64,000 nucleotides of DNA from Trichosphaerium sp. ATCC 40318 (Eukaryota > Protista > Tubulinea): the NCBI GenBank assembly GCA_038496445.1, contig JALMLS010000353.1:124001-188000 (forward strand), written 5' to 3'. The notes under the pieces are model-generated. The model had not been told where the DNA came from. It was given only the letters and a program-made list of their open reading frames with translations, and searched no databases. Of the stretch, positions 1 through 64,000 are shown piece after piece. Each line of letters begins with the position of its first letter. The first letter of the stretch is position 1. The translations under genes were made by a program, and so were the position numbers.

Positions 1-1011
1 CTATTCTCAATCGTAATATTGTATGTGTCGGAAGCAAGCATGATTGCATGACGTCCACATTCGCGGAAGACCATGTTTGACAAGTGAATGTTGTGACAAA
101 AATCGCATCCAAATCCTCTAGCTTACAAAGAACATAAGTATAAGAACAAGACACGTGTACATACAAAAAGAGTGGCCTACAGTAAGTCCAGTTATACGGA
201 CATAAAAACTGTCCCGAAACCCAAGTGCGGCGAAGAGCCACAAATTGTCCTGGCCCTCAGGCCATGATGATAAGGACGGTATGTTGTCCGAAGGAAACCG
301 TAGCTCAAATACTGGTTGAGTACCTACCAAAGTAAGATATAAAAAAAATTGATTTATGACACAAATACAATGCCTTACCATTGGCGTTTCGTATTGTTAT
401 TGGGTTATCTATAGTACCCTGCATCCGAATAAGACTATTGGTAGCTGGTAGTGCAAATGTCAGATAATAAGTTCCTCCACCAACTATAATAGTATCCCCG
501 GGTTTAACATCTACTAAACTCTGTAAAGTGCCAGCAGGGTTACTGAAAAAAAATGCTTAGTTTAGAATTTCCTTGTACTGTTACGAGTAAAACATCGCTA
601 AAAACCCATAGTACTCACGTGATCGAACCGTTTCCCATACCGCGTGGAGTGAGGAAGAAAGTATGCGCAGTAACTTTCGTACATAGTACAATAATAACAA
701 GTGTAATTATACAGATCAAGTGGGCCATTTATGCACTTTCTGCTTGTCTCAGTTTGTATGTTAAGTGTCAACATCAGTCTTGGGAACAAAATGTATTTTT
801 TCTCTCGCTTGTTGTGTAAGTAAAACAAAGGGAAGGTATTGAAAAGGTCGAGTATTTTTTTTTTTGCTTGGGTAAGAAAAGGGGACTTCAACTTTTTAAG
901 GAAAGAGAGTTTCGTGGATAATGTGCACCGGTAGCATGTACGTCGGTAACGTCAAACGTATTTAACAAGCGTACAACAATAGTTACAAGCTGTTTATAAA
1001 GAGCTTACCAT
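1..1011 (-). CDS. Right-handed parallel beta-helix (pectate-lyase-like) protein, multi-exon, 3' end outside window
   Basis: Exons translate to PAGTLQSLVDVKPGDTIIVGGGTY...GTIDNPITIRN, then GTQPVFE, then CHNIHLSNMVFRECGRHAIMLASDTYNITIEN, typical of beta-helix N-termini and repeats. The start (ATG|GTAAGC at 1011) is uncertain. Confidence 0.6.
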
Positions 1012-1364
1012 GAGGTGTTTTAATATTCGTAGCCTACCCTGTTTAATATCTTTAGGTAAAAATGAACAAATTTGCTGTAAGCGCTTGTTGTTTTGAAACA
1101 AATGCAGTGCTAGCGCAAAAAAATCACGTGCGCATCACGTGATAAAACGTTAGTAATAAATTGTTTAGTTCAAACGTGAAAACAGAAACGTCAATTCACT
1201 CAACAAAATACTTGCTAACGCCACAAAAAACAATTCATACGAAATATTGAAATTTATCAAAAAAAAATTTTACACTTTTTTATTTTCAAGAGTTGGAGAG
1301 TTGGGTTGGTATCACATACACCTTTTTTTCCATTTTTTGTAAACAACAACTAACAGCTTCCTTC

Positions 1365-3412
1365 TTAGCTAGCTTTTCCCAACTCTTGTTTTTTAGCTAA
1401 CGATTTCAATCCATGGTAAATGAATGAATCAAGAATACCAGCAACAGTAAATACACCACCTACAATAGCACAGACGCCTGTCAAGAAGTGCGCAAATGAC
1501 TTTCGAGATTCCGTAAATGTCACCATAATAGGCGAAAGGTCATACATGAAGAATACACCTATTGCGAAGATTAAAAAAAAACGATTAAAAAAAAAACTGG
1601 CAGAATTTTTTGTTCGTTCATTTCTGTTTACCTGGAAGACCTTGATTTGAGTTTTTCTCTAGTTTACGGACATGTTCAGTAACAGAGAATTGATTAGTAT
1701 AGATTGTTTCACCTACCAATAAAGTGAGTTTAAATAGCAGACATGTTTTCACGCGTAAAAAGCCTGTAAGTAATGTTTTTGAAAAAAACAAAAAAAAAAT
1801 TAACATAACTAGCCATTGCGTACTGTTCAAGTGTTCATATGTTGTTGGTACTACCTTGATGAAGTATTGGTACATAGGAGCCATCTTAGGTTCTAAAAAT
1901 CGGTCAGAACAAGAGATAAAGCCAACAAACTCAAAAAAGAAAAAAATTCATTAAAACCAAAACAAAAAAAACCGTTCATCACTCTTACCATCCCATATTT
2001 TTTTTACGCTATCAAGTGGATTTACAACACCAGGGAACTCAGTACCAAAAGAGAGCTTATTTACTGTATGTGTCATATTAAACCCAGTAAACTTAAAAAG
2101 ACCAACATCATGAATATGAGAGAAAGCATCAGCATTCTCGAACCCAGGAGAGAAATGAAAGTTACCAGCAACCTAAACAAACATACACGTGTTAGAACTA
2201 TAAATAAAGGTAGTAAAACAACGATTACACAAGGCTATTAGTAATAGTGTCTTACCAACAGATGTTCTTCAAAATGAATTAATTAAAAAAACTTACCTTG
2301 TTTACCAACAAGTAACCGTAAAGTTTACATTGTTCGCCTTTGTGTCCTCGTAAGTTTTCGCTAAATCCTTCGCGTGCACACTAATTAATATGTTACATAA
2401 ATGAGGAGGCAGTAGTAACACGTAGACAGAATGCAGACCAACATAAAAGAAAAATTGTTTTAAGTCTTGTTTAGTTACCTGTTCAATACCATCTGGGTTT
2501 GTAAAAGCCCATCCTTTAATTCTGTATGACTCACGTACTTCATCACAAGTATTACAACATTGTCCCCTGTAATTAGAATGAGCAAACAACAAAAGAAAGA
2601 AAACCAGTTCGAACAAAAGTAAATACATATCACGAACAAAAAAAAGCTAATGTTTTCAAGCCACGTGGCAACTATATCATGGATCGTACGCTTTTGCTTC
2701 AGAACCATAACAACTACCACAATATCCAGGCTTCTTTGATGCATCATTTTTTGGATCAATCTTAGCCTTGTCACGCTTTAAAGCTGAAACAAGGAGTTAA
2801 AGGCAAAAGCCATCAAAAAAAGAAGAGAAGAACAAAGAAAGACAATTTGGCATACACTCCTTTTTTGAGCCTTCTGCTAATGGAACCCCATTAGAGTCCA
2901 GGTTTGTTTTAAATATATGGTGATAAACATCTTTTTGATGCTCCCCAGATACATCCATAGCGTCGACACTCATCCCTAGTTGGTTTTAGATGAAACAAAA
3001 AACAATGAATGATGTAGTGGCGTTAAAGCAAACGAATGGTTTGTTTAGGCGATAATAGCGTAGAAAATAACGTACAAGCACATGACATGGCGTGGAAAGT
3101 GATATCAAAATTAATGCGTAGCTTTTCGCCTCTTGTTGTGTCTACCTTTAGTACTGGTTTAACCTCTAATTGGAGCCAGTACGAAAACTCTGATAGGAAC
3201 AACCACAATATGAATATGCCAGCTATGACAGAAACTACACAGTGTCAAAAACAACGCTAACAAACGCAACAAGCAAAAACGACAAAATTTGGTTCTATTT
3301 AGTGATAAAAACTAGCGCGTTCTTTCGTACCAGTGGCTCCTGATGTAGTTCTAATCCTAAAATCCTCCATTGTCTTAGGGAAGGCATCAAATACCTTCAT
3401 ACGCGACAACAT
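1365..3412 (-). CDS. ERGIC3: ER-Golgi intermediate compartment protein 3 (Erv46 family), multi-exon
   Basis: MLSRMKVFDAFPKT...RTTSGA; RGEKLRINFDITF; CCNTCDEVRESYRIKGWAF; YQYFIKVVPT; YDLSPIMV...FLTGVCAIVGGVFTVAGILDS...LGKAS. Confidence 0.95.
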
Positions 3413-11130: not shown

Positions 11131-11361
11131 AACGAGCTGTATTGTAAGAATTAAATACGCTAGAAATATGAAATCAAGTTCACAGAATAAACACTGCTCT
11201 GAGTCGAAACTATTTTTTTGTATTTTGTCCAATTCCATATACTTTGAGCTCACCTTTAAGTACTTGGGGCACTGATATTATTTTGAAGCTAGTTGCTTGG
11301 AAAAGATACAGTGTTTGGTCATACAAGTTCTTAAAAAGTTTGCTCAGCTAACTGTCTATCC

Positions 11362-14300
11362 ATGTGCGCACAATTTGTTGCAAGGCCTACTGTAACGGTA
11401 TCACATGCCTTTTTTCTTTGTTTTTGTTTTTTAACCGTTTGTAAATAAAATTAGCGCGTCGCTGGTGGAGTTATAGGTACTCAAGATGGTTTTGGCATTA
11501 ACGCCAAGTTTGAGACTGTTGAAAGCATGGCAGTTGCCGAAAACAACGTAAAAACACCCATATATTCTCTAAATGACCTTACATTTTGTTTTTAGTCAAT
11601 AATACTATCATGTGATACTCACGTGCTAAGGAGAATGAATGTTCAAGATGAGTTTAAAGTGTCAACTATTTGTGGAAAGGTGAATACACCTGGACACGTG
11701 GTACGTCCTTTGTTCGTTTCTTTCCAGCGTTCTCTTAAACAAAAGGCCACAAACTAGAACGGGCGACTAAAAAGATCTGTCATCTCACTAGTAGCGTAGG
11801 GCGATAAGTTTGCGTTCCCAAGAGGAATCTGTATTGATAAGAAGGGAAATATTTATGTTGCTGACATGGGTAATCACGTAATTCGCCTTGTAACATGTAG
11901 CTTTATTGGTTTATACTCTGTTAAACCTTTCGCTGGAGTCACTGGTAAACATGGGTTCAAGGATAACGTAGATAAATCAGTGGCAGAATTTAATAGTCCT
12001 TGCGACGTCAGGTGATTCCAACAAGTGTTTTTTTAGTTGATGACACGTGACTTACCTTTTTTTTGGTAGTGTTTCTCATTACGCGTTGTACGTTGCTGAT
12101 AGAAACAATGATAGCATAAGGCGTATATCGTTTAAAGATGGAACAGTATCAACACTATGCTCCATATCTTGTCCACTTTCGGTCACGTGTACATCAAATA
12201 TGGAAACATTATTGATACTACATAAAGATGGTAAAAAGCTTAAAATTGCTTACCTGGCGCAAGGCGCAAAGTTACAAAATATCCGTGAGTTTGACCACCC
12301 AACTTTCACTAGAGTATTTACTACTAAAGATAATGCAAACACTCTATACTTTGGATTCCATAATGAATCTAAAATTCACGTTTTAGGCACGTGATTTTTT
12401 TTTATTTTTTATTTACTCGTTTCTTGGTATACTTGGGCGTTTCCTTAACCATGACTGATGATGTTGATTTTTTTTTAGCTACAAACGGACGTTTATCAGT
12501 GATTGACCTTGCTGGAGTAAATATTACTGCGCTGACATACCACGAGCAGTTCATCTATTTATTTGAGTCAAACAATTGTTCAATTTGTAGGTTCTGTCCT
12601 TTAGCCACTAATCCTGGTACTACAGTACAGTTCAATAATCCTCAAAATCGCCCTGGATTCTCTACCGGGTCTCTAACACAAACGTTAAATCATTTGGCAA
12701 CTGTACAGCCGACTTCTCAACGTCCTACAAATAGAAGTACAAAACAAGATGTTCAAGATTTACAACGACAATTAATGGAAGCTAATTCACGTGCGCAGTG
12801 GGAACAAACACGTGTCAATAATCAATATACTCAAATGAATGGTCTAATCCTACAACAAACTCAAAGAGTAAGGAATAACTCTGAAAAAGAGTATTGACTA
12901 ACGCGTTCTATTCTTAGTTAAATCATATGGCAACAGCACTTTCTAAACGTGCGGTTCTAACTCTATCGGTCACGTATTTTGACGTTTTTATGTTTAGTCA
13001 TGAAAGGTAACGGAAGTAACCACGGTATTCTGTCAGGCATGTTCAAACTGTACTTGTTTTAAAAAAAGTACTTAATTTTTTTTTCAGCGATTTGTTTGGG
13101 CCACAGTTCTTGTGCTTGGTATTTTTCCGAGACCTTGTATTACTCTCATTTGTGGAGATCAGTTTCTACTCATTTAGAACTAAACATAACTCCTTCCACT
13201 TTTCCTGTCGAGTATTACAATTTAGAAGCATTATTCTATGCAACAGCACCTAAGGATTGGACCATTGATCGTGTAACTGCATTGAGGAATGACAAGTTAC
13301 TCCAAGACCCCTTCCTTAGAAGAATGCAACTCCTTGGTAAACACTATATCTCTTTTCTGTACTAAACACATGCTAACACGTGGAGTTAGACGAAAGAAGT
13401 GGTAACCCTAATTTTCAGCCTTCTTGGCATAAAGAAAATAGCACTCATCTTAGAACCAAAATTATGAACAACCTAGATCAGAACACGTGCTGTAAGACTT
13501 CAAAAGGTGTAAGAACAATGATGTTATGGCACGGTACTTCCACTAAAGTTATATGCTCTATAGCAGGTAAGAAAAAACGCTCAAAGAGAGGTTTCCTCAC
13601 CGTTATTTTAGACACGGGATTTTCGGCTTTAGCAAAAACAGACGCTGGCTTTTTTGGCAATGGGATTTATGGAACTTTCTCTGCTGAGTATGCTGGTCGT
13701 GTTTATGCGAAAGATGTCATGCTTCTTTGTGCTGCTGTAGCTGGAAATGTATACCCTGTTGTACGTCAGACCGTTCACTGAATTTTTTTTGCATTACATT
13801 ACTTTCCCTACCACCTGGTTGAATGTAATGAAGCCTAAGTTTATTTTTATGATCATGTAATATTTACAGATTGCACGGAGTTATATTGATTGTTTCTATT
13901 TTTCTTAGGTTCACAGTGACATGAAGAATTTATTAGGAAAAAATAGATATAAGAATTATGATTGCCATTATGTTCCTGTGCGTCCTATATCAAATAGACC
14001 TCAAGAAAAAACGTATCACGCATTAAGAGAAAGTGATAAAGCAATGTTTGATGAGATTGTTATTTTCGAGGCACGTGAAACGTAGATATAGTGTAACAGT
14101 TTTCGTATTTCATTTCTGTTTCTTTTCTCTAGTTTCCTTTTTTTTTTCGTCTTGTAAATCAACTCGCGCTCTGGGTTTACACTAGCTATTAAGCCTACGT
14201 TTGGCTAAAACTAGAGCTGTTTTATGCACTTAAAATCTTACTTCTTCCAACGTACCAAGTGTGAGACAAACTTACGAAATAGACTTTTCTTTGATAGTTA

Positions 14301-24700: not shown

Positions 24701-24992
24701 AGTTTTATGTACTATGAGCAACCAGTTGCATGAAATTGGTGGGTGCCGTTGGCAGTCTCAAGCTTCAGTTGGGACTCACACTGAACTTGTAGCTCTGGAT
24801 GACTTTTACGAGAACTCAAGCAGCGAAAATAGTAGATCAGTAAAGAGTTACAATGCAAAACAAATGGATCCAAGTCGATCCTATCAAGGGAAGTGTTTTG
24901 GAAATCTGGATAGTCAAAGGTGCTTAATACAACAACCACTTTTAAGTGTAGTCAAAATACATCACGTGGACTTAGTTATCTTAAACCAACAA

Positions 24993-25934
24993 ATGGCAAG
25001 CAGCAAGAAGGAGGTCTACAAAACGCCACTTGGTAATACGATAGCACCAACAAGTATTTTAACAATATACGATGACAACATAAACGAAATAGTTACACAT
25101 TCGCTTTATTCTGACTTCAGGATCGTAGTAAACTTACAAATCACGTGTAAATCTCTTCATCAACGCATAAGAAATATGCCAGCAGCATCAACTCTTATTC
25201 TTAAAGAAGTAGCAATACTACAGATATTCTGCTTATCAGCAGACATTAAAAAAATACTGATTCAAAATGTGCTTCAAAATAAAGTCAAGACACTGACAGT
25301 AGAACCAACAATGGGCGCACTTCTTTCCTATGACACTCTATGGGCATTTTTTAAAGATAATGTGCCAGAGTATTGTGATATTCTGGGTACAGCAAGCCTC
25401 GAATGCCAGTTTTCCACAACTGAAGAAAATTGTGGACAAACAGCTACAATGGTTGATGATTATTTAAACATGTTCACGTGTCAGGTATGTGCCTCCATCT
25501 GTGGTTCAAATCTCAACTTCAAAAATCTTGAATGCTGTAACAAGACTTGTTGTTATGAGCCCGAAGAAGAAGAATATAGATTTTATCGTACAGTCCGTGG
25601 TAAGGTCTATTGCGGAGAATGCTCTTATGATGAACAAAAGCTATTGGAAGTAATCAAAAAAATACGATTAATGTCTTTAAAGTCGAAGTGCATATTATCA
25701 CGTGATAAATATGCTTTTATCAAAAGTACAAGGAAAGCACAGACAGTGGAGTTAGATTTTATTTTAGAATTACATCAAACGGAAAAAGCAAGCAAGGCAA
25801 CATTTGTTTCACCACTTCGAAAAAGATATTACAAGTATAGAGAATACATAGAAAGTATTAAAGCTGAAAACACTTTAGTTTACAATCTGGGTGATGTAAT
25901 TTCGTGGAAGATATTTCTGGTAGTTTTAGAGTGA
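24993..25934 (+). CDS. Intronless protein with a degenerate F-box-like N-terminus and a Cys-rich putative Zn-binding region
   Basis: 313-codon ORF from MASSKK; ILTIYDDNINEIV...NLQITCKSLH resembles an F-box; Cys cluster CQVC..IC...CCNKTCC...CGEC. Confidence 0.6.
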   Translation: MASSKKEVYKTPLGNTIAPTSILTIYDDNINEIVTHSLYSDFRIVVNLQITCKSLHQRIRNMPAASTLILKEVAILQIFCLSADIKKILIQNVLQNKVKTLTVEPTMGALLSYDTLWAFFKDNVPEYCDILGTASLECQFSTTEENCGQTATMVDDYLNMFTCQVCASICGSNLNFKNLECCNKTCCYEPEEEEYRFYRTVRGKVYCGECSYDEQKLLEVIKKIRLMSLKSKCILSRDKYAFIKSTRKAQTVELDFILELHQTEKASKATFVSPLRKRYYKYREYIESIKAENTLVYNLGDVISWKIFLVVLE

Positions 25935-29322: not shown

Positions 29323-29398
29323 TACATTACAATGGTTTATAAACCATCATACTACCTTTTTCGGGCCTTTGCTTTTTTCTTCCGTTTTTTTTTTGTCT

Positions 29399-31690
<2,292 letters not shown>

Positions 31691-37367: not shown

Positions 37368-39385
37368 TTACTTAGATGTCGTTGCTACAGCAGACGGTTG
37401 ATCTACAAGAAAGTTGAGTTGAGTAAGAAAGTCAGCCATTGACATCTGTGATCTCATCTCCGGCTTTTTTGCAATCGTTGCGGTATCTTTCTGTTTGACT
37501 GGTCTTTGAAATCTTTTTTTGGGACTTGCTGGTAATGGTTTCTTTGGTTTAGGTCTTCTTGATGATGGTGTCGGTATAGGACTCTTAGGTAGAACAGGAG
37601 GTAGTTTCTTTGGTGGTACTCTAGGCGCAGGAGACTTTGGTTTTGGTATTCTTGGTTTAAATGTACTTTTAGGTGAAGGAATAGGTTTCTTTTCTTTATG
37701 TGGACGTCTGTTCGGAGGAAAACCTTTCTTTGGTGGTACGTAAGGTAGTTGTTTTGGCTTTGGTGTATATTTCGGTATTGTCTTCTTTGGTGGTCTTCTG
37801 ACAAGAGGAGCTGGTCTAGGAACAGATCTTAAAGGACCTTTTGGTGTTGGTCTTGATACCAAACGCCTTTCGGGAGCTTCACCGGAAGAGTAACTAACTT
37901 CCTCATCTGAACTTGATATTTCGAATTGAACCATACTTGATTCTTCATCGTCTAATATTGGATCGTCTGGTAAAAAATCGTCGGGAAGTATTATATCGTT
38001 TTCAACTAGAATAGAAAAAAAATCACGTGAGAAATCTTGCTTCAAAAAAAAAAAAAAAAAAAAAACACGTGTATTACGTGACGCTTAATTAATATCTTAT
38101 CGTACCTTTAAATCCCAGTAGATGTGTTACTAGCCATTGGCCCGAACTTTCTCTTCTTGTTCTTTTTGGTGCTCTTTGATGAGGGCTTCTATTTCGCTAA
38201 TTTTTTTGCATTAGATACAACACGTGGAAAAACCGAAATATCGAAGTAAAAAGCCGAGTTCTATTATGATATTTTTTGAAGCTGATAACCAGAAGTTAAC
38301 CCCCTTTTAACACCCTAAAATACCAAGGTATCTTATTGACACGTGATAAGACAGTAATTTCGTAAAAAACTAATAAAAGGAAAATAAAAATGATCACCTT
38401 TTTTATGAAAATTTCAAAAGAAAAAGGTTTACGTACGCCTGGACGGTTAAGAGCAAGGTTTGGAGATGTTCTTTGGTTTTTAATCGGTCCATTTGGTTTT
38501 ATGGGTTTAATTTGCTTGGCTATTGATGGAGCTGAACTTGTTCGTCGTAGTGCATGTCGTGGATTAGCTGGTTTGTTTGAAGATACCGTAGCTTCGATAT
38601 AAACAAAACCAACAACTTGATTACGCTTAACACACTCAACCCATTGTCCTTTCTTTTTCGCTGAGAAACTCTTAAGACTTACTACACATTTACCAATCTA
38701 TCCTGGAGTCAATCAGCTATTAATCACCATGGTTTTTCAAAAAACCCAAAAAAACAAAAAAAAAAAAAAAAGATTCTAAAGGTATCCTCTTTAGTGCTTT
38801 GTTTTGGTTTCTTTTTTAAGTCTGTTGGGCGTTGTTGGGTTTTGTTTTTCTTTCTTAATTTGTAGAACATTCGAAGGCGTATATTTACGTACAATACGTT
38901 GTGTTGTTGTCCGTATCAGCTGTACACTTAAGACACTGTGCTCAACATCAATATTTGGTGATATATAACTCCCTGTTTCGTTCCATCTTACCTCTCCCTG
39001 CACGTGATATATGTTAGAGAATTAGGTTTTTAAAACAAAGATCATTTCTAATAGGACTGAATTCTTATTTAAACGTATTTTGGAAAAAATCGAAACAACA
39101 CGTGACAACAAAATGCTGAAAGCGATGTTTTTTGTATTAATCGTTTTTGAAAATGTTAATTTTTTTTTTTGTTTTTTTACCTTTATTTGCGCTACCCCCT
39201 TTGTTTTACATATCATAGTACGTTGTTTAAGCGTCTCATCTACTAGCTCTACTGTACAGTATATTTTCTTTTTACCTAGCGCCGGTTTGTAAATCAGGGG
39301 CAACCTTCGTTTCTTTTTTTTTATATCAAATCACATCTGTATTACCTTTATACTTGGCAGATGTAATACCCACCTGCAATTCCAT
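37368..39385 (-). CDS. C2-like domain protein with a long Pro/Lys-rich tail
   Basis: MELQVGITSAK...IYCTVEL...RTMICK...VRWNE...LSVQL...IGKCVVSL...QW; PxxP-rich final exon. Confidence 0.6.
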
Positions 39386-42429: not shown

Positions 42430-44889
42430 ATGTCACCAAGTACCATACTTTTTGTTGGTATTTGTTTGGTTTTAGCTGTCCAATCCAGAAGCTATTCTGT
42501 TGGAGACACTCGCGTTCTATTCACAGATGACTCATACAAACTCTCCTTTGATAATGGCATGACATGGTCCTTTTCATACCCAACAAGGCACACAATGAAG
42601 CTACGTTACCAAAACTTCGACCCTCTCGCCGAAGAAGCACCAAAAGCGCCAGAACACTTGGACTTTTCTAACGCTAAAAAACTTGGGTCAACTATCAATA
42701 CCCATTTGATTCAATTCGAGACTATCGCCCTTGCTGCATACAAAGAAGAGCTAACCGAGAAGTATGGAATGCAATTTCACTATCCAATGCCAGATCAAGG
42801 TTACATCGTTTCAGTAAAAGCAGGCACGTGACGGTAGCGCGAAGCGACAAAATAAAAGAAAACCGTTAGTTTTACCTTTCCAAGCGATTTTCTCAATCCA
42901 GTTTTGGGCTTCCCAGCCATACTCATTCCCTTTTTCTAGGCACTGATCTTGGAGATATTGAGCAACTACCTTACGTTCGTTGGGTTGGAGAATACGCACC
43001 TCAATACAAACTTCAACTGGATATTATCAACGACGCCCTTGACGAGAAGTTCTCTTCACGTGTTCGTAGATACAATATCATGACCGTTACCAAGGTATGT
43101 GTATAAAAATTGTAGTTATATTACGCTGTAATAACTGTTTATTGCGTAGGAAATCCAAGTTGAGCTCATCGCAAAGATTGAGCGCCTTGGTGCTACTGTA
43201 TTTTACTCGACTTTGAAGGGTTTCAGGATTGAAGCAAGCCTTTCAAAATCTGACCTTATGACTGTCGCCCACCTCCATGAAGTATTATCAATTGATAACT
43301 GGAGCAAACCTGAAGATGATATGGATATCGCCAGAATGATCAGCGGCGCTGATTACGTAGAAAGAGCACCAGGCGTTCCAGTAGGGTACGATTTTTCTTC
43401 CTTTTCTTTGTTCTCCATGATGCATGCCGTTCTCGCTTTTATGCTTTGAATACTTGCTCAATTACTTCCTAGATACACTGGACAAGGTGTTAGCGGAGAA
43501 GTACTCGATTCTGGTTTAAGATCAACCCATCAAGACTTCAGATACCTCAACGACAACCTTAAAGTCAGAACAAACTCTGGTTCCACCTCTCATGGTACAA
43601 GTGTTTTCGGTATCATCTTTGGAAACGGACAAGGAAACGCAAAAGCAAAAGGACTTCTTCCTTCTGCTGCTACAGCTATTTTCGGAGCGTACGTTACATC
43701 TTTCACTCTTTATTTTTGTTTTATTTTTTGCACGTGACCAAAAAAATAACTTGACCTTCAACGTCGTATTTACTTATTTCCGAATAGTTACGGAAGCCTT
43801 GGAGACCGTTACACGTACACTGAAGCTCTTGTTGATCCATCAGGTGAATTCAGAGCTGTTTTCCAAACAAACAGTTGGGGTGCTGCTCAAACAACTGAAT
43901 ACACTTCCATCTCTGCCGAAATGGACGATATCATCTTCAAGACAGATCTTTTGATCTTCCAATCCCAGAGTAACACCGGAAACACCAGAAGCCGACCACA
44001 AGCATGGGCCAAGAATATCGTATCTGTTGGAGGTGTTAAACATAAAGACACCCTAACACGTACTGACGACGAATGGACAAGAGGTGGAAGTACAGGACCT
44101 GCTTCAGATGGAAGAATCAAACCAGATTTATGGCATTTCTATGATTACATCTTCACGACATCAAGCTCTTCTGATACATCATACACACCTTCTTTCGGTG
44201 GTACTAGCGGTGCTACACCTATCACCGCAGGTTACAGTGGCCTCGTATTCGAGATGTGGGCAGATGGCGTATTTGACGGCGCGCCAGGAAAAAGAAGAAA
44301 CGTATTCGATTCTCGACCACACTCTTCTACTGCCAAGGCTCTTATGATCAACACAGCCTTCCAATACGAATTCAGCGGACTCGCTGCTGATTACGGACGT
44401 TTCAAGCAAGGATGGGGTATGGTAGACCTTCAAACAATGTTCGACGTTGCCATCGACCACGACTGGAAGTTGCCTGTTCTTTGTGATGAATGCAACCCAA
44501 TCGGACAATCCCAAACACATACATACACAACAGCTGTACCTCAAGTGACAAATCCTTCTTACTTCCAAGCTACACTTGTATACAGAGACCCAGCTGGATC
44601 TCCAAGTGCAAGCAAGCAGTTGATCAATAATATTAACCTCCGTGTTACTTCACCAAGTGGAGTTCAATACTGGGGTAATAATGGTCTTGATGTTGCTACT
44701 GAATCTGTTTCCGGTGGAAACGCTGATCTTGTCAACAATGTCGAGAATGTTATTATCGCTAAGGCTGATTATGGTGTATGGACTGTAGATGTTATTGGTA
44801 CTGAGATTAACCAGGATACAAGACCTGATACTGATATCGCTGATGTTGGATATTCATTGGTTGTTACTTTTGGAGCAAGTCCAAAATAA
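42430..44889 (+). CDS. Secreted subtilisin-like serine peptidase (S8) with a C-terminal beta-sandwich domain
   Basis: Signal peptide; catalytic motifs VLDSG, HGTSVFG, GGTSGATP; AKNIVSVG, GPASDGRIKPD, KALMINTA, QGWG, NNVENV. Confidence 0.92.
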
Positions 44890-48405: not shown

Positions 48406-51400
48406 TTAAAGCCTGTCAACTAATTTGCTAAGTTGAGGTACATTTTCAGGCATCTTCTTGCGTTTACGGACTTCAGCAACGATTTTAGTCGCTAGGTTTT
48501 CTTCTTCGGCAAGAGGATCTTTGTCGATAATAGCCCAGTGCGAGAAAATCATAGTTGGGAAGCCTTTACCGTGAGTTGCTTCTCTCAAAGCAGCAGTAAA
48601 TCCGAAGCTCTCAATGACGGGGACGTATCCACGAAGTACGTACATTGGAGTACCTTCTTTGGGGACTAGAAGAGAGGTGTCAGTGTTTGATTTATAAAGT
48701 GTTACTGCGTACTCGCTTCCTCTTCATAACCACGTCTTTTTTGTATCACAGCACGTGATTGAGATAGCTCACTGAAAGGACATTCAATTTCAACAAGGTA
48801 CCATGGTTCCATTATCCTAGGACGTGCGCACAGTTGGGCACCGTGCATTGCTCTTCTAGTAGGTGTACAGATTTGGCTAGGTCCACGATGATTGGAATCA
48901 GGGTGAAGTTTGGCGTCGATGAGGTTGAATCTTACTCCACGAAGAGGTTCTGCGCAGAGTATACCATGAGCTGCAACACCAGAACTGAATTCTGAAGTTA
49001 TGTAGCCTTCGGCTTCGTTCAAGTATGAAATACCGGAAGTTGTATTGACAACAACATTAGGGCCTGTATTTTCTGGTCCATAACCCAATATGCGTTGTGC
49101 TTCTACTTTATTCCATCCGTATTCTCTCGATAGTAGAGAAGCGCGAGCCTTATTGGTGCCTTCTTTTTCGAGAGTGCCACTGAAGAAAGAAAGTTAGAAA
49201 ACTGTCTAACATAAGTTTGTGAAAGTGTATTCTTGTACTTACTCGTCGATTGCTTTTATTGTCTTTTCGTCAAGAGGTTCGGCAGTGAATTTCAGTCGGT
49301 TGAGTTTATTCGATGACTTGGCTAGACATTCTTGGGTTGACTTTGCTGTTACAGTTTCAGAGAAACTGACCAAAGGTTTCGAAGTGACAATGTCAATTCC
49401 GTCACCAAGGAATTTTCTCAAGTCGTTCAAGCTTGTTTCGAGATGAAGTTCTCCAGCTCCGGCAATGATGTATTGACCTTTTTATAGTGTTAATTTTTAT
49501 AATAGAAGCGTGTCAAGTACATACCAGTTGAGTCATCGACAAAAGTCTTAAGGCAAGGATCTGCCTTAGTGAGTAATTTAAGGCAATCATTGAATTTCTT
49601 TCTCTGGCCTTTATCTTTTGGTTCTACTGCCACTTGTACGATAGGACTTACACTGAACTTCATAGGAGCGATAGGGTACGCTGTTGGACCATCAGTAACG
49701 GTACCTAGAGGCAAAGATAAGCATCCAATACAAATAAAGAAAGCAGTTTTTTTGGTAAGTTAATAGTTTCATACCTGACTTGAGTAGATACTTGTCTATA
49801 CCAGCAAGACCAACGATGTTACCACAAGGTATTGAGGAGCATGCTTCGTAGTCTTTACCTCTGAGAAGGAAAGAGTTGCTTATAGAAGCCTTTCTTATGC
49901 TCTTAGAGCCAGGTTCCACAACGTCTCCTCCCAGCACCAAAACTTTAGCGCCGGTTTTGACAGTACCAGAAAAGACTCTTCCATAGCAAATCTAAATTGG
50001 GAAGTTAGAATATTACGTAATAAAAGCGCTAGGTGTGTATTGCATACGAAGTTACGGTAGTTTTGAGTTGGAACTTGTTTTGAAACGAAAACATGAGAGG
50101 TCCATTTGGATCAGCTTCACGGATTGCTTTTGCATATTCGTCGTCCTGAGGACCAGTGTATAGGTTCAATACACGATATTTCTGGGCTTCAACAGGTGAA
50201 GGCAGGTGCTCAATCATCATATCTAATTATAACAATCAGCACGTGACAAGAAAGGGTTCGTATTACTAAAGAAAAAAAATTTGATTTACGTACTTCCTAT
50301 GTTTTCTCCAGCAGGAAGCCATTCCATTAGTATTGCTTTAGCAAGTTTAGATCCGCGGAATTCCTTTTCGAATTGTTTGAGTTTAATACCCCAATTATCA
50401 CAGAACTTTAACAGTTTCTCAGTTTCATTGGCTTCAGCCCACTTGTATACATTTTGTATTGGCTTTAGGACCATCTAGCAGAAAGACATGTTAACTAAAT
50501 TGTAACAATGCTATAGAGAGCTTTGCGTCGTACCTTGACAAAATAACGTTGAAGAGGTTTACCAGACTTACTGACACCAGTGCTGTTAAATTTCTTTGTT
50601 TCGGGATCATAAAATTTATTGCCCCATAGTCTACGAAGGACTTTTTGAGGGTCAGCACCCATTTTTTTTGCTAGCATCTTAGCATAAGAAGGTAGGGTGA
50701 ACGCCCAACCCATTTTACCAGAACCTTAAAGAAATAAATGAGCAACAGCACAAGTATTTTTCAAAAAGTTCTCATTTTTTTCTCTTTTTGTTTCTTGCAC
50801 GTACCAAAAGACATGGTTCCCTTTAAAGGATGAACTGATACATCACCGAGTATTTCATCTTCGTATGTACTAAACAGGTTGTTCATCTGTGCTGCGATGC
50901 TTTCGAGTTGAATGTAGATGTCTTCCAGATCCCAGTCCTTTATTATGCAGAGGTCTACTTTATTAACATGCAGGACGGGGCGGATACGCTCTCCTAGAGC
51001 TTGGCGAGTTACAGTTTCGGTTTGTACCGATGCGCCCTTAATGACATCTACGACGACGAGTGCGCCGTCACTACAACAAAAACGTGAGAACAATACTTGA
51101 GCACCAGTAATAAAACGGTTTTTCGAACAAAAATCCTGTTTAGTTTTTCGTCACTCTTAACACGTACGTTATTCTTAGAGCTGCCGTGACTTCCGATGAA
51201 AAGTCCACGTGCCCGGGAGAATCGACAAGATTAATCAAGAAGTCTTCTTTGTCTTTGTTAAAAACTAGAGAAACTCCAGTAGATTTGATCGTAATAATAC
51301 GTTCTTGTTCTTCTTTTGTGGTGTCCATACCACGTTTTTCACCCACATCTTGCTTACGTATCATACCAGAGCGGTACAAGAAGTTATCCACAAGTGTAGT

Positions 51401-53591: not shown

Positions 53592-55096
53592 TTAGTTGCC
53601 TGTTACAGGAAGTTTATGAGAAGTACCACCCCATTTAGCATAGTCGATCCTGTAAAATGGAGCGAGTTGGAAGATACCTTGAAACTTTTTATCAGGCATA
53701 TCCTTGTCGAGTTTTGGGAAGCTGAACGTCCAGTACTTGGTTTTGGATCTAAATAAATACAGTTAATAATTGAAGGCTTGATAGATGTATCGTATAGCGT
53801 ACTCTCCAGCTGGAATATGACCAAAGTCAAAAGAGACGACATCTAGATCCATACTAACACCACCAGTTGACATACTTTCACTATGGAATGGAGAGTTTTC
53901 ATCAACATCAATGATAACTTTGCAGTCGCGGATAGGGATTGGGAGCTTGTTGGTGAAGGTGACGGATTCTCGGTATACAGTATTGTCCTTGAGATTAGGA
54001 GGTACAATGTACTCAACCTTGGTAGCACAATCTTGGACGCAAACAGTTAGGCCTCTTCCACCTGGGTATACAATTTCCCAAAGTTGGTTGTCGGCGTTTG
54101 TTCTGTCTTCCTGAACAATTTGAGTCTCTGGAGCGTCTGATGATCCAGGTACAGTTAGAGCTTTACCTGATCGCACATTAACGAATACAACATCTATTGA
54201 GTAAGGTTAGATGAAGCGCAAAAGTGTTGAGAAAAAGCAATTGTGAAGCATGACTCTTACGTTCGCCTTGAGCTTCAATGTAGAACTGTTGGTTGTCTCC
54301 ATTGTGGTAATGATACTCAATTAAAGGCGCACCATTTTCAGTGCTAGCACCGCAAATATCCAAAACCTAGCGGGGAAGTAAGTCAATCAGACAAAAAACA
54401 AGAGGCCTACAAAGAAAAAAAAACTGAAAAAAAAAAAAGTGTACCTTTCCTGAGAAGTGACATACGATCTTATAGATTGGTTTCTCGAACGTACCACCGA
54501 CTTTTTCAGCAGTAAATAGCTGGTTATCATACGATGACTTTTTTCGACCATATTGGATAACTGGAGTACTGTCGGCGTTGTCAAAGTACTTACAGTCCAT
54601 AACCAAGCCGCTGTGCTTGTTTCTAATGAAAATAGGACCAATTGATTTTTCTCCAATGCTGGGCTTGTTTTTGTTTCCAGGTTCCATTGTACGCTGCGTA
54701 GAGAACATCCACTCACCGAGAACACTAACCCATACAAGATAGTATGTTGTGCCCTTCCACTTGAACGTTATTTCTTCCTCAAGGCCATCGGCGTTTCTAT
54801 TCTTAAAAGTGAGGTTTGTTGCATCTTCACCATTCACTTTGAGCCATTTCAGAGATGTCTTGGTCCAGCTTCCCTGCGCAGAAGTTAGTGAAGTGAGTTG
54901 GCTACCTCATGCAGATACTATGAAGTAAGAAGAACGCGTTTCCCTTGAAACTAAGAACAAAGAAGAACAAACTTTTAACAGTTTTAGGCACCACGTGCAT
55001 TCAAAAAACTACACGTGCCTTGGTAACGTCGAAGCATGCTGTTAATGTCAAATCGCCGAACGTGTAAGTATACTTGTAATCTCCACCTTCGCTCAT
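53592..55096 (-). CDS. Ricin-B (beta-trefoil) lectin domain protein
   Basis: IRNKHSGLVMD...VIQY...NQLF; SGKVLDICGASTENGAPLIEYHYHNGDNQQF; SGKALTV...NADNQLW (QxW/F repeats). Confidence 0.88.
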
Positions 55097-58279: not shown

Positions 58280-58350
58280 TAAAACGAATAAAGTCTTTAC
58301 AGAAAAGTCCTCGACTGAAAACCTTTGAATCCTTGTTTTGGTTCTTGAAA

Positions 58351-58878
58351 ATGTCAGAAGCAACAAAAGCTACAGTACATCGTTATATCCGGCCAGTTAG
58401 TATCCGCGACGCAGAGGCTATCGCTAAACTCTATAACTACTATGTCAAGACCGCTATAGCTACTTTTGAGGTCTCAACAGTTTCTGCGTCTGAAATGGCG
58501 AATAGGATAGCTGAAACAACTAAAACATATCCGTGGCTTGTCTATGATGATGGAGAGATACGAGGATATGCTTATATAACTAAATGGAAGAAGAGAAAGG
58601 CGTACTACAAGTCAGGAGAGATAACTCTATACGTTGATAAGAATAACAAGAAAAAAGGAATAGGTTCAGCTCTTTATGCTTCTCTTTTAATAAAAGCACG
58701 TGATATAGGATTACACGTGTTACTAGCGGGTATATCTTTACCTAATAGAGGTAGTATCGCAATACATGAGAAGTTCGGTTTCAAAAAAGTAGGCGTGATA
58801 AAAGAGGTTGGATACAAGTTTGGAAAGTGGGTAGATGTTGGATATTGGCAACTTATTCTTCACCACTCTAGTCTGTAA
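58351..58878 (+). CDS. GNAT acetyltransferase, phosphinothricin/methionine-sulfoximine (Pat/YncA) family, intronless
   Basis: IAKLYNYYV...ATFE, PWLV, RKAY, GIGSALY, NRGSIAIHEKFGF, VGYKFGKWVDVGYWQ. Confidence 0.92.
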   Translation: MSEATKATVHRYIRPVSIRDAEAIAKLYNYYVKTAIATFEVSTVSASEMANRIAETTKTYPWLVYDDGEIRGYAYITKWKKRKAYYKSGEITLYVDKNNKKKGIGSALYASLLIKARDIGLHVLLAGISLPNRGSIAIHEKFGFKKVGVIKEVGYKFGKWVDVGYWQLILHHSSL

Positions 58879-59100: not shown

Positions 59101-60934
59101 TTAGACAGTTCTAGGTGATGCTCTAGATACAAGGTCAATGATAGGTATTTTATCATAGTCAACCACTTCACTGCCTTTTTCATAAAAGCATACTCTCTTC
59201 GAACTGCCATCATGATTCCACTCTTTGTACAAACCATGTTTGATTTCTTCTTCATCACTAGTTTTGATAACAAAGTAATGACACTTTAATTTACCATTAG
59301 CAAACCACTCTATTATCTCTACTGTCTTGCCATCAGAATCATCTCTCTTCATCTTCTCTTGTCCATTACGATATTGGTAGTATGTAAAACCTTTTTTTTC
59401 CTCTTTCTTAACATAAACATATCCGTTCTCGTCATAGTTGATATTCTCAACAACACCATTATAACACATCCGCGAATCAGGGATAATACGACCATCTTCG
59501 TCTGTTATCACACTGTAATCAACTTCCATGGTACAATCAATAAGCCCATTTCTATAACACGTGCTTGAATCAGAAATAATAATTCCGTTCTCGTCAGTCA
59601 CCGTGCTGTACTCGAATTCCAGGGTACCATCATTGGACCACCTCTTCGTTTCAATAGCTGTCCCTCTGTTGTATACAGATGATTCTTCCTTACGTTTATT
59701 CTCGTACCAAGTACAATAAGCACCATTCAGTAATCCGTGTTTGTGATATCCTGATGTTTTATGATGAACACAGCCTTTATACCACTCACAAAACTTGCCT
59801 TCAGGCATTCCGTCCTTATAAGTAACAAGGCTTTTTAGATCTCCATTAGAGAAGAACTGTTTTTGGTGTCCTTCACGGATACCATCAACATATCTTTCTT
59901 CTTGGTATACACCACCAGAATCTTTGTAAAACAATTTGCGAGAACCGCAAATAAAGTCATACTTGAATTCGACTTCTTCTTTCTTCTCGCCAGTAGGGAA
60001 GTAAGTCTTCATAGTTCCATCAAGACATCCATTCACAAAAGGCATTTCAGACTTGACACAGCCGTTTTCATGGTATGTGAAGACCCAACCGTTCTCAATA
60101 AAGCCATCGTTGACATCAAATTTTTCGACAAGTTTGCCTGTACTATTGTATTGTAAAACTTCTCCATGTGGGACACCATCTTTGTTTGTATACTGTTCCA
60201 TTAGGGCACCGTTTTCGAAATACTTCTGAGAAATACCAACAGGTACACCTTCGTCCAGGTACTCTATAGACTTAAGATTACCGTTACCATACCATCTCTT
60301 AGCAATGCCATGAGGTTTGCCAAGATAGCAAGCGAACTCTGTAATTTTTATCTCGTCTTCATTCCAGGTTTGTTGAAGACCATGTCTTTTCCCATTTTCG
60401 TGTTCATAGGAGCCCATCATAGTGCCATTAGCGTAATAGAATCGTGTGGCTCCGTGAACTTTGCCATTCCATGTTTGTTGAATAACACACTTTCCATCTT
60501 CTCCCCACGTTTGCTCAATGGCTGTATCACGCTCGTTGCCTGATGTGTAGCACTCGTACTTCCTTTTACCGCACTCATAGAACTCTTTCTGAAAGCCAAA
60601 AGGAAACGTATGAATTGCTGCTATAGCACCACTTGAATACCAACGGTACCAGAGACCACGTTTGTTCAAATCTTCATCGAAATGTGTGCTTACAGCTAAA
60701 TCCTAAATTTAGGTATTAGTACGAAACGACACGCATTCTTGGATTGAATCTCAAGTTTTTTCTAAATTTGGTTTTTTGTTGAGAATACGTTACCTTTGAT
60801 AGTAGATGCCATTTCAAGAACACCTCTTTGTCTAGAGAGCATATGTAGTGTTGAATGCTTGCGGGTAGTTTCAGTAGATGATTTATAGGTTTAGGGCCTA
60901 TGTATAGCTTTATTGAGTGTATGTGAGAATACAT
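59101..60934 (-). CDS. F-box-like + MORN-variant repeat protein (probably one intron near 60700)
   Basis: N-terminal LLKLPASIQHYICSLD; many Y.NG...G...W repeats in the 522-aa ORF. Confidence 0.75.
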
Positions 60935-61192: not shown

Positions 61193-61993
61193 TCAGTCGT
61201 ACATCTTTTGCTCCATTAAACGACCAAATCTATATCTTAGATACTCTCCATGACGCTTGTTATCTTTATAGTGTACAGAAACTGTAACACGACCTTGTGT
61301 ATCCCAATATTTGTACAACCCTTCTTTCTTTCCATTTTCATAAACAATATAACACTGTTTAGCACCACCATTGTAATAAAACTGAGTATAAACCCCATTA
61401 CGTAGGCCACATTTATAATGTGCCTTTAGTAATAAAACACCAGAATCACTCCACTTACAATCTTCACCATGCTTTAAATCATTTTTATATTGAGTAACAC
61501 CAGCCTTAACTCCATTATCGTACCACTGATAAAAAGTACCCTCTCGTAATCCTTCAACAAAGGTTTCTTGTGTTGCTAAACTGCCATTTAAGTGCCATAC
61601 CTTTGAAGTACCATGTCTTAAACCTCTCTTGTAAAAAGTTTGTTCAAGAAGCGCTCCATTGTCACGTGATTTTCTAGTAAACTCTCCAACGAGTAAATCT
61701 TCTTTGTATGTACCAGAATCGATATTTTGACCGCAAAAATATGTCACATAAGCGCCGTTCTTCTTACCATGAAGATAAGAGCAATCAATAGTCAGAGTTT
61801 TATGTATGAACTTGAAACGCCCGTGTTTGTTTAAATCTTTATCAAATCGTGAAGTAACGGCACATTGATAGCATAATAGAGGCCATAGATGAAAAACGCA
61901 TTGATCAAGATTAAAAATAATGTACTGAAGCTCTAAAGGTATCGAGAGTATATTTATATTGTTTTGGTCTATTTCTACTGCGTCTATTGACAT
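61193..61993 (-). CDS. F-box-like + MORN-variant repeat protein, intronless
   Basis: ILSIPLELQYIIFNLD followed by about 8 repeats such as YKRGLRHGTSKVWHLNG. Confidence 0.8.
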   Translation of the reverse strand: MSIDAVEIDQNNINILSIPLELQYIIFNLDQCVFHLWPLLCYQCAVTSRFDKDLNKHGRFKFIHKTLTIDCSYLHGKKNGAYVTYFCGQNIDSGTYKEDLLVGEFTRKSRDNGALLEQTFYKRGLRHGTSKVWHLNGSLATQETFVEGLREGTFYQWYDNGVKAGVTQYKNDLKHGEDCKWSDSGVLLLKAHYKCGLRNGVYTQFYYNGGAKQCYIVYENGKKEGLYKYWDTQGRVTVSVHYKDNKRHGEYLRYRFGRLMEQKMYD

Positions 61994-62178
61994 TATGAAG
62001 ATGTACTAAGAAAATAAACAGCAAAACATGAAACCTCGCTTAGCAAGCCATAACTTAACGTTTCTTTAACAGCCGAGGCACTCTACAACCTTTTTGCTGT
62101 CTTCAACAGGTAGCTTTCATCTATGGCATCTCACAATATAAGAGTAAAACAATAGGTTACGCCTCAAGACATGAATTT

Positions 62179-64000
62179 TTATTTTTTTTTAGTTGGCGCT
62201 GCAGCTACAGGTTTCTTTCCTTTACGTCGTGATTTTGATTTTTCTCCATGAGTACTACAAGAATTAGGATGTTCTTGAGGATGTGTCATGTATTGTTTCA
62301 TCATAATCGAGTTAAAGCTATTCTTCCCTTCGCATGCTATCCTTTTCTTAAGAGCTTTAACACCAATAGCTCTTGTGAACCTTCCTGCGTTTATTCGGAC
62401 AGATGCTACAAATGCTTTATATAAAAGATCAGCTGAAACATCTGGTGTGATATCTTCTTCTTTTTCTACTTCTTGCCACCTGTTTACAAGCGTAGAAATT
62501 TCATCTGTTCGGGCACTTGAGGTGAAGAGGGTCAATACTCAAAAACAAAGAAAAAGTGAGTGGTAAAAAAAAAATTGTTTTTCTCGATAATATAAACCGG
62601 CATTCATGTCCACATAGCATACATCAACACCCATAGTAATACTGAATAATATGAAAGCAATTTTTTTTTGTAAAAAATCAACTCACAGGGCGAGGAGAAA
62701 GGTTGAAAAAAAAGACAAAAAAAACAATGTGTTTGTAAAACTCGAGCTAACAAACACGTACTTGACCTTGCCGTATATGCTTAACAGCTCTATTCTTCTC
62801 TTATCAGATTCTGCATTAGTTTCTTTACATATACCAGCGGTACAATTGCATTCATGCTTGAACCTTTCTTTGGCTTGCACAAGTCTTCCTGCACGTGGCT
62901 TAAGTGGCATGAAATAAGCGATTGTAAGCTCTTCTCCTTCCTCAATTGGTCTAAGCGCACGAAGGAACATATGATTTTTTTTTCTATCCCAAGCTTGATA
63001 ACAATTTGGTACACAAGAGTGATTAATACGAGAAGCATCTAAACAATAATTAAACACGTGACAACCAAAAAAAAGGGAGTTAGCTAAAAATAATTTCAAA
63101 AAAAACTGTTCAAGTGACAGCGTCTACGCTGAACGTCTTTGTTAAAAATAGTATTTTTTTATGCGTACACAAGAAGAGGCCATTGGCCTTTGTATCCAAT
63201 GTTCTGACTGTAATCTGGTTCGACATAAATACACCTTGAATGGATTTTTTTCCCAGATCTTTTTCATGTACATCCATTAAATCCTTTGCTTGTTTACTAC
63301 CCGGCTTCCCTTTTAGATTCAGTCTAAACTCTTCTCTAATAATTTTCCCTAATTCTGCAGGTCTTGTTGATGCCATAGCAAGCATAATAGACTAGAAAAG
63401 AAGACCATCAGGATGATAAAAACAAAACCAAAAAAAATTTCAGGCTTTTTGCAAAATTACAAAAAATTGAGGTTTTAAACGTACAGGTGACTCTCTCATA
63501 ATAACATCGCTCTGTGAGATAGCTTCCTTTGCGAACATGCCAAGGCCGTGTATTTCAGACTTTTTAATCACCCAAGGCTTTAAAAGTTATTTAGACGCGT
63601 TTTTTATGCATAGACCGTTGTACGAGCGTATTGCAAGCTTAGGTACGTGATGAGCGTACCCCAAATTCTTGAGCAGTTGGGCTGGCTGTTATTTCAATTG
63701 GCTTTTCCTCTTTAACCTCAGCTACTTCCCCAGCCTTTTCACCGACTATTGCTGTTGGATCAGCCTCGTCAGTAACATTTTTTGCTGTATCTTGTTCTAC
63801 TACTACGTTATCTGCCTCGGTAGTTTCTTCCTTAGCTTCTGCGGCTTCTGTGGCTAAAAATCTGCGATTTGAGAAAACTATAGCGTTTAATTAGCCTCCT
63901 GACTGCCGTGGTTGATTATTATGGCGTTTTGCTTATTAGTAAGGAAATATAACCAGAACGTGCCTGTTGTGCGCTTTGCGACCGGTATGCGCGATTTTTG
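62179..64000 (-). CDS. SET-domain lysine methyltransferase, 5' end outside window
   Basis: IHGLGMFA, ASRINHSCVPNC, LRALRPIEEGEELTIAY, post-SET CNC...C. Confidence 0.85.

Follow-up and report, generated by a model that had tools for sequence, protein, structure and literature searches.

Position-independent excess of the exact palindrome CACGTG in a 64-kb stretch of the genome of the amoeba Trichosphaerium sp.

Why should one exact six-base palindrome, CACGTG, recur far more often than expected along the nuclear DNA of an amoeba, inside genes as well as between them? The question is raised by positions 124,001 to 188,000 of contig JALMLS010000353.1 (assembly GCA_038496445.1) of Trichosphaerium sp. 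ATCC 40318, one stretch of one genome, 64,000 bp long, which was scanned in full and is called the window below. Position-independent excess of one exact palindrome has so far been a bacterial curiosity, known from the highly iterated palindrome HIP1 of cyanobacteria, and its function is still debated. Full-text literature searches gave no report of such a palindrome excess in a protist, an amoebozoan or any other eukaryote. The draft genome of Trichosphaerium sp. (BioProject PRJNA826761) comprises 70.9 Mb with 37.69% guanine plus cytosine (GC), introns of 75 bp and exons of 154 bp on average, and about 8 introns per gene (PMC10521059), values with which the window agrees; the words CACGTG, motif, palindrome and methyl are absent from that paper.

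Abundance and distribution of CACGTG

The window contained 74 exact copies of CACGTG, with starts from 152 to 63055. The initial annotation of this DNA, made from the sequence alone, had estimated about 73, and all 14 coordinates that it named were right. Its extended forms were also recovered by exact count, TCACGTGA 11 times and GTCACGTGAC twice, and its GC content of about 35% was replaced by a measured value of 37.7%. Control palindromes of the same composition were low in number: GTCGAC, described before as a handful, occurred 8 times, GACGTC 9 times, GTGCAC 5 times and CAGCTG 13 times.

Markov models of orders 0, 1, 2 and 3 fitted to the unmasked window predicted 7.8, 10.1, 11.2 and 18.9 copies, respectively. 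As 74 of the 180 CACG tetramers sit within the sites, the background was re-estimated with the CACGTG sites masked. The same orders then predicted 7.7, 9.4, 8.3 and 6.4 copies, which corresponds to an observed/expected ratio (O/E) of 8-12. The excess of about 10-fold claimed earlier was thus confirmed, and it survived the modelling of ACGT and CACG k-mers. An order-4 model predicted 37.7 copies; this model already holds the overlapping pentamers CACGT and ACGTG. By z-score CACGTG ranked first among all 4096 hexamers at Markov orders 1 and 3, and it was also first among the 64 palindromic hexamers, the others of which were not enriched. Extrapolation of the window density to 70.9 Mb gives about 82,000 copies.

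The public runs covering the locus are spliced transcript contigs. From them 21 introns were placed in the interval 8.3-14.4 kb, within two plus-strand genes, one SNF2-like, with a spliced model of 609 clean codons, and one NHL-repeat/PARP-like. The 13 copies in this RNA-supported stretch comprised 8 exonic copies, in all three reading frames, and 5 intronic copies, so that the word is not confined to promoters, in agreement with the initial annotation. Exons and introns were assigned over the whole window with a coding caller trained on the codon usage of the RNA-confirmed exons and of long open reading frames (ORFs). The caller recovered 84% of the confirmed exon bases together with 15% of the confirmed intron bases; the coding segments were joined by a splice-site model, and 12 of the 21 confirmed introns were recovered exactly. 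The resulting classes are partly predicted and approximate, and predicted introns longer than 200 nucleotides (nt) probably conceal small exons. The copies were divided as follows:

152..63060, no strand assigned: full set of 74 copies, 21 in called exons, 20 in introns and 33 in the remainder (spacers, untranslated regions and exons missed by the caller)
Exons: 21 copies, 0.84 per kb, O/E 6.4
Introns: 20 copies, 1.96 per kb, O/E 13.9
Remainder: 33 copies, 1.15 per kb, O/E 7.0

The 21 copies in called exons were distributed over the reading frames as 4, 11 and 6. Spacing between copies was Poisson-like, with a mean of 862 bp, a coefficient of variation of 1.08 and p=0.34 in a Kolmogorov-Smirnov comparison with an exponential distribution, which rules out phasing or clustering. 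The largest gap, 4.8 kb, was inside expectation, and 5 pairs lay less than 25 bp apart where 2.1 were expected. The genes in or near which copies fall are mutually unrelated (E2F, EF-G/EF2-like, kinase, SET, subtilase, DAO, ricin lectin, MORN and GNAT). Searches of the window for tRNA genes and Rfam families gave nothing.

Codon choice, splice donors and origin of the copies

Coding DNA contained 24 copies of CACGTG. Permutation of synonymous codons, with amino acids and codon counts fixed, gave 4.3 +/- 1.9 copies and a maximum of 12 in 2000 trials, and shuffling of codon order gave 4.1. A high-confidence coding set of 7.1 kb, made up of RNA-confirmed exons and Pfam-supported long ORFs, held 10 copies against 1.35 expected, and none of 3000 permutations reached 10. 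A choice of synonymous codons that creates the site, which the initial annotation had raised, was therefore found in both sets. The word was used in 24 of the 57 codon contexts capable of it, namely 4 of 9 His-Val, 14 of 29 [SPTA]-Arg-[VADEG] and 6 of 19 xxC-Thr-[CW] contexts. The codons needed are rare, GTG making up 7% of the Val codons and ACG 7% of the Thr codons. The amino-acid contexts themselves were not enriched (57 versus 51.9 +/- 6.8 in amino-acid-shuffled proteins). Since synonymous choice is enriched and the contexts are not, the force acts at silent positions and lacks the strength to alter proteins. The odds ratio in coding DNA, about 9, translates into a scaled coefficient near 2.2; with the sites masked, ln(O/E) was 1.9-2.2 in coding DNA and 2.1-2.5 elsewhere. 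Synonymous resampling, the exact synonymous permutation and the codon-order and amino-acid shuffles together exclude an artefact of codon usage or amino-acid content.

The following individual copies or groups of copies were located; each entry gives coordinates, strand and setting:

11620..11625, plus: exonic, His-Val (CAC GTG), in an NHL-repeat exon of the NHL+PARP-like gene; sequence and transcript contigs
11695..11700, plus: exonic, His-Val, final six bases of the exon, followed by a GTACGT donor; RNA-supported intron 11701-11799
12044..12049, plus: intronic, 20 nt upstream of the 3' splice site, beside a branch-point-like CTTAC; RNA-supported intron 12012-12069
12184..12189, plus: exonic, frame xxC ACG TGx (Val-Thr-Cys); transcript contigs
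12388..12393, plus: bases 2-7 of a GC-AG donor (AG/GCACGTG, the slash marking the splice site); transcript joint giving intron 12387-12478
12788..12814, plus: two exonic copies (12788 and 12809), 21 bp apart, frame xCA CGT Gxx (Ser-Arg-Ala and Thr-Arg-Val)
13377..13382, plus: intronic, 7 nt upstream of the 3' splice site, overlapping a branch-point-like CTAAC; RNA-supported intron 13337-13389
13484..13489, plus: exonic, Asn-Thr-Cys; transcript contigs
14072..14077, plus: bases 2-7 of a second GC-AG donor (GAG/GCACGTG), intron 14071-14362; the transcript end re-maps at 14364, and a one-base shift of the boundary is compatible with the sequence
24963..25704, plus: four copies (24963, 25142, 25475 and 25699) within one 406-codon ORF
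38024..38071, no strand assigned: two copies (38024 and 38066), 42 bp apart, each directly after a run of 8-12 A, an instance of the A/T-tract association described below
42825..42830, plus: copy in a GC-AG donor (CAG/GCACGTG), by prediction only
48752..48757, minus: exonic, in the domain IV exon of a conserved EF-G/EF2-family gene
55012..55017, minus: copy in a GC-AG donor (AAG/GCACGTG), by prediction only, with a second copy 20 bp off at 54992
58697..58719, plus: two copies in the gene of a GNAT acetyltransferase of bacterial type (phosphinothricin/ArsN1)
59558..59563, minus: copy within a 522-codon MORN_2-repeat gene, acquired-looking; the neighbouring gene, 61193-61993, has a copy at 61663

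The splice donors were unusual in two respects. GC-AG introns made up 2 of the 21 RNA-supported introns (12387-12478 and 14071-14362), an unusually high share, and both begin with GCACGTG, as do two predicted GC-AG introns (42824-42939 on the plus strand and 54802-55018 on the minus strand). The commonest 5' splice-site hexamer was GTACGT, in 9 of the 21 confirmed and 12 of the 59 predicted introns, and not the usual GTAAGT; GTACGT itself occurred 30 times in the window against 11.4 expected. This usage suggests that the 5' end of the U1 small nuclear RNA is adapted to GUACGU in this lineage. GTACGTG donors look as if they were drawn toward CACGTG at the expense of the canonical T. Sixteen of the 21 RNA-supported introns were without any copy of the word.

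The origin of the copies was best seen in the GNAT gene (58333-58878, plus strand), which is intronless, of a bacterial type resembling phosphinothricin or arsinothricin (ArsN1) acetyltransferases, and has an N-terminal extension of 17 residues. Its best matches in a protein search, with 55-57% identity, were all bacterial or metagenomic, and the gene was probably acquired by lateral transfer and has since adapted to the composition of the host. One of its two copies, GCA CGT GAT, lies over a variable Ala-Arg-Asp, and the other, CAC GTG, lies over the invariant His128 and a variable Val. There was no indel relative to nine bacterial homologues, which excludes an origin of these copies by insertion. 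The flanks of the 74 copies were mutually unrelated, and a repeat search and self-BLAST of the window found no dispersed repeats or DNA-level paralogues bearing a site. Two repeats were present, a 15/30-nt tandem array at 34.8-35.4 kb and a small repeat near 14.4-14.6 kb, and neither had a site. A dispersed repeat, a miniature inverted-repeat transposable element or a paralogue as carrier is excluded by the unrelated flanks and the absence of a repeat family. Because there is no indel in the GNAT gene, no carrier repeat and no relationship between the flanks, the copies arise in place by substitution, acquired genes included. The transcript contigs, together with the GNAT and MORN_2 genes, thus bear out the earlier statement that copies enter introns and coding exons, including those of acquired-looking genes. 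Generation of the palindrome by hairpins or template switching was also excluded; the complementarity of the flanks equalled that expected for independent flanks, and other palindromes were not enriched.

At one comparable site the word could be followed in a relative. The copy at 13484 was unchanged in transcript contigs (run X3) of about 96% identity, despite differences at 6 of the 149 surrounding bases, one of them directly adjacent.

The force that maintains the word

The 18 one-letter variants of CACGTG together occurred 192 times, compared with 186-194 expected from the site-masked background, and each of their nine reverse-complement classes lay at 0.5-1.3 of expectation. CATGTG/CACATG occurred 23 times against 27.9-30.9 (0.74-0.82), which was not significant, and the other 16 variants lay at 1.04-1.07. 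Among the neighbours of CACGTG, neither an accumulation of decayed copies nor a depleted precursor was seen. These values were compared with the stationary distribution of a Hasegawa-Kishino-Yano (HKY) substitution chain over all 4096 hexamers, treated as isolated hexamers:

Single path, resembling Vsr/Dcm (CATGTG/CACATG to CACGTG enhanced, reverse blocked): site O/E 2.5 at 10-fold and 4.0 at 60-fold enhancement, saturating at 4.7 at 1000-fold; CATGTG/CACATG 0.58, 0.19 and 0.01, respectively; other 16 variants up to 1.17
Protected CpG (loss blocked only): site O/E 1.25; CATGTG/CACATG 0.93; other 16 variants 1.01
Path-independent force, S = 2.0-2.5: site O/E 7.4-12.2; CATGTG/CACATG 1.00; other 16 variants 1.00
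Observed: site O/E 8-12; CATGTG/CACATG 0.74-0.82; other 16 variants 1.04-1.07

The protected-CpG model was rejected, as only a 1.25-fold excess is attainable with it. Only the path-independent scenario fits the observed values, and the classical repair-bias reading is therefore disfavoured. The HIP1-like system proposed in the initial annotation accordingly stood in one part and fell in another. A position-independent palindrome excess at the DNA level was found in exons in all frames, introns, splice donors, spacers and codon choice; classical repair bias of the Dcm/Vsr kind was not supported, given its ceiling of about 4.7-fold and the fact that CATGTG/CACATG is not emptied.

The flanks of the copies showed a modest, symmetric preference, with a purine at -2, T at -1 and avoidance of C (p about 0.002 for each, with NCAC as control). 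The two flanks varied independently; complementary pairs numbered 21 (21.0 expected) and 10-mer palindromes seven (about 6.6 expected). The 44 oriented copies showed no flank asymmetry relative to the direction of transcription. The palindromic core, the independent symmetric flanks and the lack of transcriptional asymmetry are together what would be expected if a symmetric dimer bound two independent half-sites on duplex DNA. CACGTG is the core of the class B E-box and of the G-box, and the preference R-T-CACGTG-A-Y resembles that of Cbf1/USF/TFE-type sites. As the agent, a putative widespread symmetric DNA-binding reader, of the bHLH type, the bZIP type or a methyltransferase, appears most plausible. 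In a post-hoc test against compartment-matched positions, 22 of the 74 copies had an A/T run of at least 6 no more than 15 bp away (11.6 expected in the pooled set, p about 0.004), as had 11 of the 33 copies in the remainder (5.6 expected). Copies were thus near A/T tracts about twice as often as expected, which hints that some of them may have a part in chromatin.

The explanation that we favour, with confidence evenly balanced for and against it, is that weak selection preserves CACGTG as the exact site recognised by a putative abundant symmetric DNA-binding protein. Copies would arise by point substitution wherever the local sequence permits, and a weak force, independent of position and of substitution path, would hold CACGTG at 6-14 times its neutral frequency. 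The force would favour the complete six-base word alone, with S of about 2-2.6 when ln(O/E) is read as 4Nes or its gene-conversion equivalent, and would act through synonymous exon positions and through every base of introns and spacers. The word would be the exact recognition site of an abundant homodimeric DNA-binding protein, each occupied site bringing a small additive gain, and the gain would come from marking gene bodies and spacers, be it for chromatin, for chromosome structure or as "self-DNA". The confirmed and predicted GC-AG introns that begin with GCACGTG count in favour of this explanation, as they imply a force able to convert splice donors.

Several points weigh against selection for the word. 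The excess in introns was about twice that in the remainder (ln O/E 2.63 versus 1.94, about 2.5 standard deviations), so that the force is perhaps not uniform and perhaps tied to transcription; this surplus, which neither selection nor conversion explains, could reflect some coupling to transcription or constraints that act in spacers. The boundaries of the classes come in part from our own coding caller, the remainder of which includes three RNA-confirmed exonic copies. Transcription factors usually accept near-cognate sites, and no near-cognate variant was enriched here. The force was deduced with a simple HKY chain on isolated hexamers, the comparison of positional conservation covered the single site at 13484, and no bHLH protein or G-box-binding bZIP protein is encoded within the 64-kb window. 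Finally, selection and biased gene conversion at the level of alleles give the same equilibrium pattern in one genome.

A bolder proposal, which we regard as possible though somewhat doubtful, is a true HIP-type system in a eukaryotic nucleus, in which about 80,000 copies of CACGTG, favoured continuously and at every base, would serve as a self or chromatin mark that a dedicated symmetric protein reads, possibly with methylation, or would be a self-propagating conversion motif. The force would suffice to bend codon usage and even to change GT donors into GC donors.

Allele-level biased gene conversion, or motif drive, is the strongest competitor of selection, and we think it unlikely. The allele with the intact word would be the preferred donor in the repair of heteroduplexes or double-strand breaks, without benefit to the organism; a bound protein would make the intact allele cold for breaks or would steer the choice of strand in mismatch repair. 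This process would lead to the same path-independent equilibrium as selection, with neighbours at 1.00 and O/E equal to e to the power S. A force of similar size at synonymous coding sites, in introns and elsewhere (ln O/E 1.9-2.6) and the Poisson-like scatter without positional logic agree with it, and sexual-development gene expression is discussed for this amoeba in the genome paper (PMC10521059). On the other side, recombination alone would leave the roughly doubled excess of introns over the remainder unaccounted for, and a putative sequence-specific protein would still be needed. We know of no self-favouring conversion motif that has been described.

A methyltransferase acting on C5 of the cytosine in the central CpG, coupled to Vsr-like very-short-patch repair that restores T:G to C:G in CATGTG/CACGTG and so creates sites, is improbable. 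The CpG in the core of CACGTG, the mildly low count of CATGTG/CACATG (23 versus 28-31, not significant) and the link of HIP1 to orphan methyltransferases (PMC4390886) speak for it. The single path, however, does not exceed about 4.7-fold even at 1000-fold enhancement, compared with the 8-12-fold observed. For even a 4.3-fold excess it requires CATGTG/CACATG at or below 0.1 and the other 16 variants at about 1.15, values far from the 0.74-0.82 and 1.04-1.07 found, and blocking the loss of CpG alone yields 1.25-fold.

A signal at the RNA level is very improbable. Here CACGUG would work in the pre-mRNA, either as an enhancer of splicing or element of the donor, or by pairing between self-complementary copies. 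Introns were indeed the densest class (1.96 per kb, O/E 13.9), several copies lay at donors or beside branch-point-like motifs, and close pairs below 25 bp numbered 5 where 2.1 were expected. A palindrome would nevertheless be unexpected for a single-stranded signal, and the flanks were symmetric with respect to transcription. The remainder, intergenic DNA included, was still 7-fold enriched, 16 of the 21 RNA-supported introns were free of copies, and exonic copies occurred in all frames.

Slightly less probable again is an ordinary bHLH/bZIP regulon, in which the copies would be E-box or G-box elements in promoters or enhancers of co-regulated genes. The identity of CACGTG with the class B E-box and G-box core fits such a regulon, as do flanks resembling those of Cbf1/USF/TFE-type sites and an A/T-tract association reminiscent of yeast promoter architecture. 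At least 21 copies, however, lay in coding exons, in three frames, and 20 in introns, and there was no concentration in promoters (0.84 per kb in exons and 1.96 per kb in introns versus 1.15 per kb in the remainder, Poisson-like at one per 0.86 kb). The near-cognate variants were not enriched (nine classes at 0.5-1.3, in total 192 versus 186-194), and a genome with about 27,000 predicted transcripts (PMC10521059) would carry about 80,000 copies at this density.

The possibility that the excess is an artefact, whether of composition, of codon or amino-acid usage or of a dispersed repeat, can practically be dismissed, as the order-4 expectation of 37.7, the one value in its favour, comes from a model holding the word's own two pentamers, whereas the site-masked orders 0-3 give 6.4-9.4, the codon shuffles give about 4 versus 24, there are no repeats with a site and the flanks are unrelated.

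Neighbouring genes and known systems

Several other features of the window were recorded. The gene at 11460-14400 (plus strand) has NHL repeats fused to a PARP-like catalytic domain, an unusual combination; the Pfam PARP match had E=9e-5, under the gathering score. Just 3' of the last confirmed intron of this gene, at 14408-14583, there is a direct repeat of about 100 nt with 80% identity and an offset of 74 nt, which encodes a repeated peptide ending in STPSNVS.PQQ. Transcript contigs of a 2022 sample (run X3) cover 10165-14071 with about 96-99% identity and the same splice junctions, and thus represent a closely related lineage in public data; run X4 likewise contains transcripts of about 96% identity. 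The ORF at 24714-25934 (plus strand), with 406 codons, no intron and four copies of CACGTG, had no Pfam domain, and no homologue was found in a collection of 5.8 billion proteins, in metagenome contigs or in viral contigs. The tandem array at 34782-35411 has a 15/30-nt unit in 26 registers with 60-84% identity and lies in an extensin-like ORF rich in proline; both strands have long ORFs here, and the local GC content reaches 41%. Two adjacent intronless MORN_2-repeat genes of bacterial or viral type, 59101-60669 and 61193-61993 (both minus strand), have 522 and 266 codons, and no close relative of the pair was found in viral contigs.

If the excess is real as a genome-wide property, a weak sequence-specific force shapes every compartment of the nucleus, including synonymous codons, introns and the type of splice donor. 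This would be relevant to models of codon bias, to motif-based promoter analysis and to gene prediction in this lineage. Enzymes of the PmlI type cut CACGTG and are sensitive to CpG methylation. Their cutting of the word provides a simple experimental handle, and it may offer a route to a new chromatin, methylation or gene-conversion system.

Four known systems invite comparison. The E-box and G-box sites of bHLH-Zip and bZIP proteins (Cbf1/CDEI, USF, TFE/MITF, Pho4 and the plant GBFs) have the same CACGTG core, which is read by homodimers in those systems; the symmetric and independent flanks found here, with T at -1 and a purine at -2, are a further likeness. In yeast, Cbf1 is a general regulatory factor that organises nucleosomes beside poly(dA:dT) tracts, and the roughly two-fold association of CACGTG with A/T tracts resembles this arrangement. 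The known sites, however, are promoter or centromere elements that number from hundreds to a few thousand per genome, compared with about 80,000 implied here. Here, moreover, the density in exons and introns is equal or higher, synonymous codons are bent toward the word and near-cognate variants are not enriched.

In E. coli, Dcm and Vsr skew the frequency of CCWGG; very-short-patch repair acts on one type of mismatch, and the skew is modest, with depletion of the deamination product. The enterobacterial system (CCWGG/CTWGG) and the present one have in common a sequence-specific shift of oligonucleotide frequencies at the DNA level, regardless of coding status. They differ in that the excess found here is above the single-path ceiling and the product words are not depleted.

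The periodic An/Tn clusters (PATC) in the introns of Caenorhabditis elegans and the uptake sequences of competent bacteria, which are oriented 9-12-mers, are genome-wide and largely position-independent marks in an organism's own genes, thought to be read as self versus foreign. Unlike CACGTG they are not exact palindromes, and the acquired genes in the window already bear CACGTG. The idea of a self-DNA mark would be attractive, by analogy with these systems, given the heavy giant-virus gene traffic in this amoeba (PMC10521059).

The closest likeness is to HIP1 (GCGATCGC), also a short exact palindrome that is hyper-abundant relative to k-mer expectation and present between genes and, in every reading frame, inside them. 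The two words are made by substitution and codon choice and not by a mobile element. One paper on HIP1 argues for selection rather than biased repair behind an excess of 15-300-fold (PMC5861425), and the equilibrium pattern found here likewise leans toward selection. In another paper, HIP1 is linked to orphan methyltransferases, and roles in natural transformation or type IV secretion are proposed (PMC4390886); the latter links have no obvious eukaryotic counterpart. CACGTG differs further in its sequence, as a hexamer, in its place in a eukaryotic nucleus with spliceosomal introns, and in its lower excess of 8-14-fold. Its spacing is Poisson-like at the short range covered by 64 kb; for HIP1 a quasi-periodic spacing of 10-90 kb is reported. 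If the system in Trichosphaerium proves true, the puzzle that HIP1 has posed in cyanobacteria for 30 years would gain its first tractable counterpart in a eukaryote.

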